DNA of 64,000 nucleotides, taken from positions 15,376,001-15,440,000 of the forward strand of contig CP075494.1 in NCBI GenBank assembly GCA_021613535.1, given 5' to 3'. A program made the translations under genes and the position numbers. Shown piece by piece: positions 60,526 through 63,817 of the stretch (position 1 is the first letter of the stretch; every line of letters starts with the position of its first letter). Source of the stretch: Adineta vaga. Lineage: Eukaryota > Animalia > Rotifera. The notes under the pieces were generated by a model. The model saw only the letters and a list, made by a program, of their open reading frames with translations. It was not told where the DNA came from and searched no databases.

Positions 60526-61911
60526 TTATTCGAGAATTTCAACAATTTTTCCAACGGCAACAACTCGACCTTTCTCACGTAATGTAAAACGAGCAAGTTG
60601 ATAAGACCGACTAAATGGTTCCATACAAATAGCTTGTGCAGATTGTGTTAATTCAAATCTTGCTATAGCTACCTGATCTTGTTTTATAAATCTTGGATGT
60701 TCTTGAGTTCTTTCACCTGTATTACGATTGATTAATGTTATTAATTTTTTAAATCGAACTTCAACAGCAGTTGTATGGATATGAAGAATAGTGGAGTAGC
60801 TTGGGTACATGACTGATTTATGTTCAAGTACAGTAATCTATTTACAAGATGTACATATCTTTAGAATTAATTCTCTATTTATTTTTTCTTTTACTTGTGC
60901 ATCGAAGACTATTCCAACTCCGCAGGGTCCTTGTTGAGCATTACATAGTATAAATCCAGATGAAATTTCCTAAAAAAAGTTCATTAAAAATTAGCATTAA
61001 TTCAAACAAAAAAAACTAACTTCTTCAACATTTTTTAATTTAAGTCGAACAATTTGTCCACAAACACAGGAATTAGTTTCAATATCTTCATAATAACTAT
61101 TTTTAACTTCAACAGCTGTTCGATTAGGCATAATTAAACATTGATCACCAACATGACAATATCCTGATATAACTTTACCGATAATATTTGTACCCATTTC
61201 CTTAAAAAAATTCCAATTTGATATTTCAAAAATAAAGTCAAACTAACTGTATATCGTTTAGTAATGACTATTCTAAGTGGACCATTAATATTGTGTTCAA
61301 GTACTTGTAAATTATCAAAACATTCATCAAGAGGTGATTCTCTAAATGGAAAAAAAGATTTTTGTTTTCATTTTTGAGATATTGAGAATATATAAACATA
61401 ACGATTCTTTTTTTTTGCGATTCACATTATCATTTGATTTAGACGATCTTCAATGTTGATACGAACTAGTTTTATGAGTACATCTTTCTCTTTATCGGTA
61501 ATGTCAAAAGTAACATGGTTTTCATTTTCAATATAGCGAATAAGATCGTATTCTTTACAATGATCATGAATAATATCATATAAATAATTTTCAATGAAAC
61601 CATGTGATTCATAATTTATTGTACTTTTATGTAATATAAGTTCTATTAATTCATTTTTTGACAAGTCTGCTTCGTTGCAAAATGCTTGAAGAATCTTATT
61701 AATTAATAATATTGCTTCATCATTGGTTTCTTCTCCAGATTTAATCCATTCTAATGTAGATGGTCTATAATATTTTTTGACATCATAACATGGCTCTAAT
61801 GTTCTCCAGTTTTCTTTATTTTTTTGATTAAATTCATCTTTAATTCGTTCGATCAATAGCACTAATAAATCACCATAGACTTCGTTTAATACTCGACGAC
61901 CAGAGTTTTGT
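60526..61911 (-). CDS. Divergent eRF3 (GSPT/Sup35) domain II-III module lacking the G domain, preceded by an unknown helical exon; 5' end unresolved
   Basis: GPLRIVITKRYT/EMGTNIIGKVISG...LIMPNRTAVEV...VRLKLKNVEE/EISSGFILC...FDAQ/ITVLEHKS...LHIHT...PRFIKQDQVAIARFE...ARFTLREKGRVVAVGKIV. Four intact exons, 61341 to 60526. Confidence 0.8.
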
Positions 61912-62632
61912 CTATAACAAATGATTAAGAATTTGAGAGATGAGAATAAAAGACTGACTATGAGTTGTCTAATTCCGAGTACGAATATAAATGAAAGTTT
62001 AACTGTCTGTAATATCACTTTAAAAATAAATCTGTCACTTGATTTATAGCAGAAAAAAAAAGACTTCATTTATAAATTATAATTGACATTAGATTTTTCT
62101 ATAATTTTACTTTTGAGGGTAGCGGAAGAACAAGTTATAGAGGACATAAAGTCAGAATCAGGACAAAGAAAAGAAGTCTACAGAAAGCGTATGAACTAGA
62201 ATGAACATGGGTGAATTGCACTGGTATTGTACCGTTTGACGGGAAAAAACGAAAAAAATACAAATCGTTGTAAATAATATCGAAATAGTGCATTCGAAAG
62301 AGACCTAAAATATGTGTTCAAATATACTATTTTCCACACTACCAGACCGTCTGTTGAATACAAAATCGAGTTTTATAAAATTACGCATATTTTTGACGAT
62401 ATTTTAACATTATAGAAATCGATACTTTTCTAATTTTTTCACTAAAAATATTCCATATAAGCATTTATATATTGATATTATATGTCAGATGAAAGCTTTT
62501 GAAAAGAAGAATCTTATAAGGATACGAAAAAACACTATTTATAGATACGCAAACGTTGTTTTTGCAATGAGATGTTAGGTTAATATATTTAAATCATACT
62601 AATGTCATAGTAGCGTGCCAACATTATAACAG

Positions 62633-63109
62633 TGTTGATTGATCTAAGATTTATATCACAGATACATAATTGATTGCTCAACATATGCTGAAAATTTCAG
62701 CTCTAAAGGTTGAGAAATCGTGGAGAAAACTATTAATATATTTCATGTACTTATGTGTGAGTGAAATGGAAATTTGATATTTTGTTTATCACTACATCAT
62801 TTCAAATTTATTTTCGAATTTCTGATGGTAGCTACTTCCTTCTTAGACACGACTTTTCGAAGAGACATCTTAAGATGTCTCTTCGAAAAGTCGTGTCTAA
62901 GAAGGAAGTAGCTACCATCAGAAATTCGAAAATAAATTTGAAATAATGTAGTAATAAACAAAATATCAAATTTCCATTTCACTCCCACATAAGTACTTGA
63001 AATATATTAATAGTTTCTCCACGATTTCTCAACCTTTAGAGCTGAAATTTTCAGCATATGTTGAGCAATCAATTATGTATCTGTTATATAAATATTAGAC
63101 CAAACAACA
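62633..63109. repeat. ~480-bp spacerless palindrome centred between 62871 and 62872
   Basis: ...GAAGAGACATCTT|AAGATGTCTCTTC...; arms of ~238 nt, perfect over the inner ~73 nt; yields the same pseudo-ORF on both strands. Confidence 0.97.
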
Positions 63110-63817
63110 ATGGTTTAGAGAAATCATAGAAGAAATAAGGCGTTCCGTTAATTTTGATCAGGGGGATATTATATTGACGGTTGTTTTTTTCCAATTGAAC
63201 GGATGATGCAATGTTTCTTCTTTTCCTTCCAGAAAAAAGAAAAGAATTCTACGATTATTTATGTGATAAACATTTTCTCATTGTATTTTTTTGTTCATTT
63301 TTTCTTTCTCTCCTTCTTTTTTCTCTTTTTCGTCTCATCAGAGCCTCACTTGCCGTTGAAAGGTATGTGGAAGAATTAATAACATCAGTTGGAGACAAAT
63401 TGCGTACAAGAAAAATCTAACATATCTTCACAAACAACATGAGAGTGAGGGTATGAATGAGAATCTGGGCGTGGGGAGGGGTCAGTACAAGCAGCCACAA
63501 CCGATTTCGTCATTCTTTAGATGAATCATCATATGGTGTGATGTCTATAAATAATTTCAAAAGACTAGTTTTAATTAAAATTGATACTTTAAAATCAAAT
63601 ATACTTACGATATATATGCTACAAAGTAATTTAGTAAAAAAGATAAAAAAAATGACGATATGAAATAGACAATTCAAGGGATATTAAAGAAATGCAATTA
63701 ATTCAACTTGTTCATTGTAACAACTGTGTTTGTTCTCTTTTGATAAGAAATTTTATATGACAAGTTTTCCATTTTACTTCTAAATAAACGGTTATAAAAA
63801 AAACAGAGAAAAAAATC

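Follow-up and report, generated by a model that had tools for sequence, protein, structure and literature searches.

A GTPase-less eRF3 derivative joined to an orphan helical domain in the bdelloid rotifer Adineta vaga

The window analysed here is a stretch of 64,000 nucleotides (nt) from the bdelloid rotifer Adineta vaga (G000:C5:15376001-15440000). It lies on C5, a chromosome-scale contig of a genome of 100.8 Mb that is contained in six contigs and has a GC content of 31%. Near the end of the window, the minus strand carries an intact, transcribed and correctly spliced gene of six exons, the product of which combines domains II and III of the termination factor eRF3 with an unrelated helical domain, the GTPase domain (G domain) of eRF3 being absent. 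In sequence order, the protein consists of nine N-terminal residues, an acidic helical domain of ~160 residues (called the orphan domain below), a linker and eRF3 domains II and III. The locus is very probably a real and conserved chimeric gene. It is already present in GenBank, as a hypothetical protein only, and the automatic names in UniProt go no further than 'GTP-eEF1A C-terminal domain-containing protein'.

The locus, its exons and its transcripts

Splicing of the six exons between 62410 and 60526 of the minus strand gives a protein of 390 amino acids (aa) that is identical, residue for residue, to GenBank I4U23_026909 (P0205), which was retrieved by a word search with its Rotaria ortholog. 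The five introns are 473, 84, 47, 51 and 57 nt long, and all of them begin with GT and end with AG. Stop codons arise easily in this AT-rich genome, yet the open reading frame (ORF) is uninterrupted over its 390 codons. The initial annotation of this stretch, made from the letters of the DNA, had listed four intact, in-frame, canonically spliced eRF3 exons, and their translations are indeed clean once the boundaries are adjusted by one or two bases. It had placed the helical exon at 61911-61426, ending in AT/GTGAAT and spliced in frame across 84 nt to AG/A GAA TCA, and this junction, which is in phase 2, holds. The exon set of that model was right, except that the first coding exon of 26 nt (62410-62385), which is seen from P0205, had been missed. 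The acceptor of intron 1 occupies a position common to the annotated model of a paralog on contig C2 (P0001) and to the Rotaria proteins, in which the preceding exon ends in K. The translation of exon 6 reads ARFTLRE in place of the eRF3 motif GRFTLRD, as had been noticed earlier.

Evidence for transcription comes from the contigs of four runs, which were aligned to window positions 60001-66000 (L008:1-6000, reaching beyond the end of the window). Since assembled contigs were the only data, contig depth is no measure of expression. Runs X1 and X2 (labelled 'RNA?') are unspliced across the introns and were treated as DNA-like and excluded from the expression evidence. A contig of 662 nt from run X5 (labelled as the same species, 2018) aligns to 61575-61426, 61341-61247, 61199-61020 and 60968-60902. 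This contig spans three introns in succession, the first of which is the fusion intron, with the GT..AG ends of the minus strand, and it thus contains the RNA junction 61426/61341 that the initial annotation had proposed as a check. The 47-nt intron is confirmed independently in run X10. A second X5 contig covers 60638-60837 without mismatches, and its overhang of 15 nt is identical to the last letters of exon 5, which corresponds to the 60895/60837 junction. Exon 2 is covered by RNA contigs at 61426-61575 and 61588-61853. Exon 1 and the 62385/61911 junction are uncovered by the contigs of the four runs.

The Pfam family PF00009, which represents the G domain, is absent from the exons of the window gene and from the family members of the P0205 type. 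The β-barrel domains II and III (PF03144, PF22594/PF03143) are present, the match of domain II being weak. A six-frame scan of the whole genome gives 71 matches to PF00009, the nearest of which lies on C5 at 14.19 Mb, ~1.25 Mb from the window gene, in agreement with the earlier statement that G-domain motifs are missing upstream in the window. The gene is spliced as predicted, is transcribed and is without PF00009, and its description as a chimeric, non-GTPase gene stands. The separate canonical eRF3, the existence of which was to be confirmed, is found at C3:4.0977-4.1002 Mb. It contains a PAM2-like motif (LNVNAMEFVP), all of the G-domain motifs (GHVDAGKS, DAPGH and NKMD) and GRFTLRD.

The AlphaFold2 (AF2) model of full-length P0205 has a predicted local distance difference test (pLDDT) score of 76 and a predicted template modelling score (pTM) of 0.46. 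Both halves of the protein are modelled with confidence, and β-structure is predicted for residues 194-389. Residues 169-187, which lie between the halves, have pLDDT values below 50, and the relative arrangement of the two halves is therefore undefined. When modelled from a 24-row alignment, the orphan domain is built of eight helices (mean pLDDT 87, pTM 0.80). It contains 31 D+E versus 21 K+R residues and has an isoelectric point (pI) of 5.0, in line with the earlier description of the ~160-codon exon as helical and acidic. The model is all-α, with neither strands nor a P-loop, and matches no GTPase fold. Pfam has no family for exon 2 of the window gene and gives no consistent match over 24 members of the family. 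A Foldseek search of the PDB with the orphan domain returns nothing at E ≤ 0.001, the best hit of an exhaustive VIA-align search has a Z score of 5.5, which is under the tool's noise guide for helical proteins, and a shape search of the ESM Atlas gives template modelling (TM) scores below 0.5 throughout, the Atlas feature search giving no usable match.

A single-exon SMI1/KNR4 (SUKH-1) gene is situated 1.4 kb upstream of the window gene on the same strand and is a separate gene with its own stop (Table 1). In the RNA-like runs, its contig depth exceeds all others by a wide margin. A paralog at C5:723 kb shares 46% identity with it. Synteny based on this gene and on a 417-aa ORF is uninformative because these represent multi-copy or subtelomeric families. 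A nearly perfect palindrome of ~490 bp (window 62625-63117) lies about 200 bp upstream of the first exon of the window gene. Its arms (62727-62871 and 62872-63016) are 97% complementary and have no spacer, and the outer arms are 93% complementary. The palindrome looks like a foldback element. Beyond the end of the window (L008 4990-5783), a plus-strand gene has two short introns (59 and 54 nt, GT..AG) in contigs of X5 and X10.

Origin of the fusion family and constraint on its members

The exon boundaries suggest how the fusion might have been formed. The last four exons of canonical eRF3 have boundaries identical to those of the window gene. The canonical intron that precedes GPTFIEYLDNL is in phase 2 (TATAA/GTGAGT...TAG/A), and its position and phase are the same as those of the fusion intron. 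As the fusion intron corresponds to a conserved phase-2 intron of eRF3, the origin of the gene looks like exon shuffling at that intron. The last four exons of eRF3 would have been retained, and exons for a coiled coil and the orphan domain would have replaced the exons for the G domain.

A profile of the A. vaga helical sequences was compared with 1.84 billion representative proteins. It matches 62 proteins at E ≤ 0.001, 40 of them at E ≤ 1e-10. The named matches with the fusion architecture come from Rotaria sordida, R. magnacalcarata, R. socialis, R. sp. Silwood1, R. sp. Silwood2 and A. vaga, all of which are bdelloids. The remaining matches are from metagenomic or run assemblies, plus one repetitive moth protein, the match to which is probably compositional. 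An initial word search, made with the ORF of 215 aa around the helical exon, gave no match, as the relatives found later by the profile escaped its length window and word index. The longer members of the family have a variable N-terminus with a coiled coil, followed by the orphan domain and eRF3 domains II-III, and are without PF00009. Comparison of both parts of the gene with other genomes, which had been advised, thus shows that the fusion architecture recurs in Rotaria. The initial reading of the gene as a chimera is borne out by Pfam and by the splicing; it had overlooked that the gene belongs to an old family with a second A. vaga member and a Rotaria ortholog.

A tree of domains II-III was calculated from 32 rows and 220 columns under LG+C20, with vertebrate and mite outgroups and without HBS1 and eEF1A rows. 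The G-less proteins form a single clade (support 100/99), bar one probably truncated model. This clade is nested within bdelloid eRF3, above the monogonont Brachionus (96/98 and 100/99). The window gene is sister to P0090 of Rotaria sp. Silwood1 (100/99), and the second A. vaga gene, on C2, is sister to the Rotaria protein P0117 (100/99). The nesting and the sister pairs indicate one origin from eRF3 in the bdelloid stem, with subfamilies that were established before the split of Adinetidae and Philodinidae. On the evidence of the tree, the fusion family arose once from bdelloid eRF3, after its split from the monogononts, and the window gene and P0090 are orthologs. P0205 and P0090 share 77% of the residues of the orphan domain and 73% of those of the linker; the corresponding values are 80% for domain II and 74% for domain III.

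The A. vaga genome contains three paralogs of the helical exon (on C2, C3 and C6). The C2 copy (12,497,992-12,498,438) is positioned directly upstream of a second G-less copy of eRF3 domains II-III, with which it forms the gene I4U23_009644. In this gene, domain II is shorter by ~13 residues, and both available models (279 and 285 aa) seem to be truncated. Upstream of the C2 gene lie ORFs similar to the N-terminal part of P0117, its ortholog in Rotaria, and no counterpart of these ORFs is present near the window gene. The C3 and C6 copies stand alone. Another eRF3-like gene of A. vaga, I4U23_015537, has kept its G domain. It belongs, as do proteins of A. ricciae, A. steineri and Rotaria, to divergent eRF3-like lineages inside bdelloid eRF3 in which the G domain is present. 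Degraded pieces of domains II-III located downstream of canonical eRF3 are 85% identical to the window gene over 86 nt.

Table 1. Coordinates of the window gene, its neighbour and related loci
Feature	Position	Strand	Evidence and remarks
Exon 1, coding	62385..62410	-	ATG at 62410; 8 codons + 2 nt (MLKYRQKY+GC); donor GT 62384-62383; P0205 begins MLKYRQKYA
Intron 1, 473 nt, phase 2, GTAATT...TTATAG	61912..62384	-	splice identity with P0205
Exon 2, acidic all-α domain, ~160 residues	61426..61911	-	translation/ORF; AF2; profile relatives
Intron 2 (fusion junction), 84 nt, phase 2, GTGAAT...ATTTAG	61342..61425	-	X5 contig joins 61426 to 61341
Exon 3, relic of last G-domain helix/linker and start of domain II	61248..61341	-	aligns to canonical exon GPTFIEYLDNL...RYK, both 31 codons
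Exon 4, eRF3 domain II β-barrel	61021..61200	-	weak Pfam match to GTP_EFTU_D2; flanking 47- and 51-nt introns seen in RNA contigs
Exon 5, end of domain II	60895..60969	-	omega 0.15; RNA contig coverage down to 60902
Exon 6, eRF3 domain III with ARFTLRE, stop 60526-60528	60526..60837	-	Pfam GTP-eEF1A_C 1e-26 and GTP_EFTU_D3 7e-18; omega 0.17
SMI1/KNR4 (SUKH-1) gene, single exon, own stop	window 63818-64510 (to L008 4510)	-	Pfam 5.9e-12
Second G-less fusion gene of A. vaga, I4U23_009644	L011 4176-6253 = G000:C2:12497176-12499253	-	motif GRFALFD
Further eRF3-like gene with G domain, I4U23_015537, 489 aa	L010 = G000:C3:14532734-14534426	+	motif GRFTLRE
Degraded eRF3 domain II-III pieces with a stop	L009 8017-8618 = G000:C3:4103017-4103618	+	3 kb downstream of canonical eRF3, same strand
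Stand-alone orphan domain, C3	L013 1360-1976 = G000:C3:3970233-3970849	-	in-frame TAA and frameshift; no eRF3 part
Stand-alone orphan domain, C6	L015 1492-1866 = G000:C6:12634299-12634673	-	125-codon ORF; no eRF3 part
Helical-domain ORF P0004, 178 aa, and frameshifted domain II remnants, bdelloid-like metagenome scaffold ERZ12293615	L016 3851-4115 and 6028-6504		stand-alone

Comparison of the window gene with canonical eRF3 over 219 gapless codons (Nei-Gojobori) gives a nonsynonymous divergence (dN) of 0.204 and a synonymous divergence (dS) of 0.76. Their ratio (omega) is 0.27, which points to purifying selection and is not near 1, the value to be looked for in a young pseudogene. For the individual exons, omega is 0.96 (exon 3), 0.31 (exon 4), 0.15 (exon 5) and 0.17 (exon 6). 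The linker encoded by exon 3, to judge from the sequences, drifted freely after the loss of the G domain and has been conserved since. In a neutral simulation, the 161 observed substitutions were scattered randomly on the canonical sequence in 20,000 trials, and the frame of the eRF3 part remained open in 0.025% of them. The observed amino-acid identity to canonical eRF3 is 146/219 (67%), versus a neutral mean of 114/219 and a maximum of 134. The simulation and the excess of identity therefore exclude that the gene has been a pseudogene since the duplication. A young pseudogene is likewise rejected on the grounds of the omega value, the rarity of an open frame in the neutral trials and the conserved ortholog in Rotaria.

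A possible link to eRF1 and its alternatives

The eRF3 part of the window protein resembles a fragment whose binding properties are known from other organisms. The best PDB match of P0205 residues 173-388 is human eRF3a (2.6e-53), and the ranking of the matches is eRF3, eEF1A and then HBS1L. The alignment of residues 190-388 with the eRF3a fragment of 204 residues in PDB 3E1Y, which is a complex of eRF1 with eRF3 domains II-III, runs from end to end. In the crystal structure of eRF1-eRF3(2-3), eRF1 is stated to contact domain 3 of eRF3 with its C domain, close to GRFTLRD (PMC3950680). Yeast eRF3 is reported to need no more than its C-terminal third to bind eRF1, and in Schizosaccharomyces pombe this binding depends on the F and R of GRFTLRD (PMC2613156). 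Both residues are kept in the window protein (ARFTLRE, in which G and D are changed) and in P0090 (GRFTLRN).

By combining these data, it is possible to propose what the window protein might do. As its domains II-III correspond to the fragment that was crystallised with eRF1, and as F and R are kept, the protein would most likely still bind eRF1 (less likely Pelota) through these domains. Because there is no G domain, stimulation of release in a GTP-dependent manner would be impossible. The protein would be unable to dock on the ribosomal GTPase centre or to hydrolyse GTP, and might thus serve as a GTP-independent holder of eRF1. It could then be a decoy in competition with canonical eRF3, which would make termination less efficient. 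Alternatively, it could be an adaptor that brings eRF1 to another partner by means of its orphan domain and, in the longer relatives, of a coiled coil or an EMC2-like N-terminus. An effect on termination or readthrough, as suggested in the initial annotation, is plausible from the sequence. The decoy or adaptor mechanism is put forward tentatively, as a possible rather than a probable one. The explanation as a whole, a conserved fusion gene the product of which holds eRF1, falls just short of an even chance.

Several observations weigh against this explanation, and some of them concern the state of the A. vaga gene on C5. The depth of its RNA contigs is low, about 3-5x in contig terms. Ten canonical eRF3s have 76 invariant positions in common, of which 64 are retained in P0090 and 54 in P0205. 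In domain III, 13 of the 38 invariant positions are changed in A. vaga (25/38 kept) versus 3 in P0090 (35/38 kept). The end branch of the A. vaga gene is 2.5-fold longer than that of P0090 (0.24 vs 0.095). No homolog of P0090 residues 1-179 is found within 10 kb of the window gene, the orphan domain of which is preceded by nine residues only, so that the coiled-coil/TPR-like extension of 100-250 residues seen in relatives is not present. The A. vaga copy thus looks less constrained than its Rotaria ortholog. Furthermore, the X5 contig in which the fusion splice is demonstrated (contig 14) skips the last exon, and with it domain III: it passes from 60902 through 17 letters to 60138-60001. The gap of 763 nt is bridged by these 17 telomere-type letters, which are GGGTGTGGGTGTGGGTC when read in gene orientation. 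This contig differs from the reference by ~2%, with two synonymous changes and one S-to-I change in exon 4, and may be a deletion allele of the other haplotype that was healed with telomere-type repeats, or a chimeric contig. On the metagenomic scaffold that encodes P0004, the helical exon stands alone, and frameshifted, degraded remnants of domain II are situated 2 kb upstream on the same strand. For that exon, omega is 0.58 and the aa identity is 56%, only 1.5 standard deviations above the neutral expectation, and the degraded state of this relative means that decay does occur among members of the fusion family. These observations, the RNA depth aside, would be expected if the family were functional and its C5 copy in A. 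vaga were decaying, having lost its N-terminus and part of its constraint and maybe being part-deleted on one haplotype, so that it is transcribed with little or no function. Such decay is unlikely, given that the ORF of 390 codons is intact where the neutral trials so rarely keep the eRF3 part open, that five of five splice-site pairs are intact, and that the second X5 contig has a normal last-exon junction. Besides, many of the changes at invariant sites are conservative (I/V/L/M, G/A/S), and domain II keeps 26 of its 29 invariant positions.

Other observations concern the partner of the barrels. It has also been noted that GRFTLRD is common to all of the EF1 family, and that the role of this motif may be structural and not specific for eRF1 (PMC2613156). 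Most other subfamilies of the G-less proteins no longer have the R (GRFALFD, GQFTLQD, GRFTLHD, GRFALCD), and eRF1 binding is therefore no family-wide constraint. It is possible that the barrel module has been repurposed and has lost eRF1 binding, serving as a scaffold for another ligand such as Pelota, an RNA or tRNA end or a bdelloid-specific partner, with the main function residing in the orphan domain. In favour of this, the rate of evolution in the G-less clade is several times that of canonical eRF3, and the orphan domain also occurs in stand-alone ORFs. The C2-type subfamily (P0117, P0015 and the A. vaga C2 gene) starts with a segment that matches residues 8-115 of EMC2 (E 5.5e-8), which points away from the ribosomal A site. 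Such a loss of eRF1 binding is somewhat unlikely for the window gene: its own subfamily retains F and R, P0090 retains nearly all of the invariant positions in domain III, and the A. vaga genome has only three loci of the eRF1/Pelota type, at C5:10.679 Mb, C2:7.694 Mb and C6:5.189 Mb, with no divergent extra partner. It is extremely improbable that the fusion is an annotation artefact, with the exons of a G domain further upstream or with a helical domain that is a degenerate G domain, in which case the gene would be an ordinary eRF3 paralog. Exon 3 does still code for a relic of the end of the G domain. However, the ~1.25 Mb around the gene are free of PF00009 matches, the unrelated SMI1/KNR4 gene with its own stop is immediately upstream, the GenBank model starts 0.5 kb upstream of the helical exon, the N-termini of the orthologs are not G domains, and the helical domain is all-α, has no P-loop and matches no GTPase fold.

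The proposed holder of eRF1 can be compared with known systems. Canonical eRF3 (GSPT1) has homologous domains II-III with the same intron positions and phase, and the window gene falls inside the bdelloid eRF3 clade. In contrast to canonical eRF3, the window gene has neither the G domain nor the PAM2-bearing N-terminus, the orphan domain being found instead, and it evolves about five times faster. The laboratory construct of eRF3 domains 2-3 (PDB 3E1Y, 3E20) binds eRF1 without a G domain and is equivalent in extent to the module of the window protein, which, unlike the construct, is natural, carries an extra domain and is only a putative binder of eRF1. EMC2 (subunit 2 of the ER membrane protein complex) is represented in the C2-type relatives by a fragment only, and this segment is absent from the window gene.

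To our knowledge, the known descendants of the termination GTPase are eRF3, Hbs1 and Ski7. Ski7 and the short, SKI7-like isoform of HBS1L are also derivatives of GTPases of the termination type that act as adaptors without GTPase-driven delivery, as is described in part (PMC2613156, PMC4933942). However, Ski7 has a G-like domain, descends from Hbs1 and has lost GRFTLRD, whereas the rotifer family descends from eRF3 and has kept domains II-III, which are absent altogether from the short human HBS1L isoform. The window gene has no G-like domain and, by its position in the tree and the order of its PDB matches, belongs with eRF3 and not with the Ski7/Hbs1 lineage. A full-text search of the literature gave no description of bdelloid eRF3 derivatives or of eRF3 paralogs that lack the GTPase domain. 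As far as these searches reach, a paralog that has the eRF1-binding barrels alone and a new domain in exchange for the GTPase has not been described earlier.

If it binds eRF1, the window protein would represent a natural counterpart of the eRF3 domain 2-3 fragment made in the laboratory. It would then offer a testable handle on whether cells regulate termination by sequestering eRF1. The gene also gives such a handle on exon shuffling at a conserved intron phase as a builder of new derivatives of translation factors. The orphan domain, which is predicted with confidence and has no known fold, is a target for structural study. Should the protein not bind eRF1, the gene would still represent a clean case of module reuse, although of narrower interest. 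A wider and rather doubtful possibility is that the GTPase-less eRF3 set of the bdelloids as a whole holds eRF1 or Pelota off the ribosome or delivers them to new partners, in some members via the EMC2-like N-terminus. If this were true, the set would allow termination or ribosome rescue to be slowed in a regulated manner, for instance in desiccation and recovery, and the window gene would be its minimal member.

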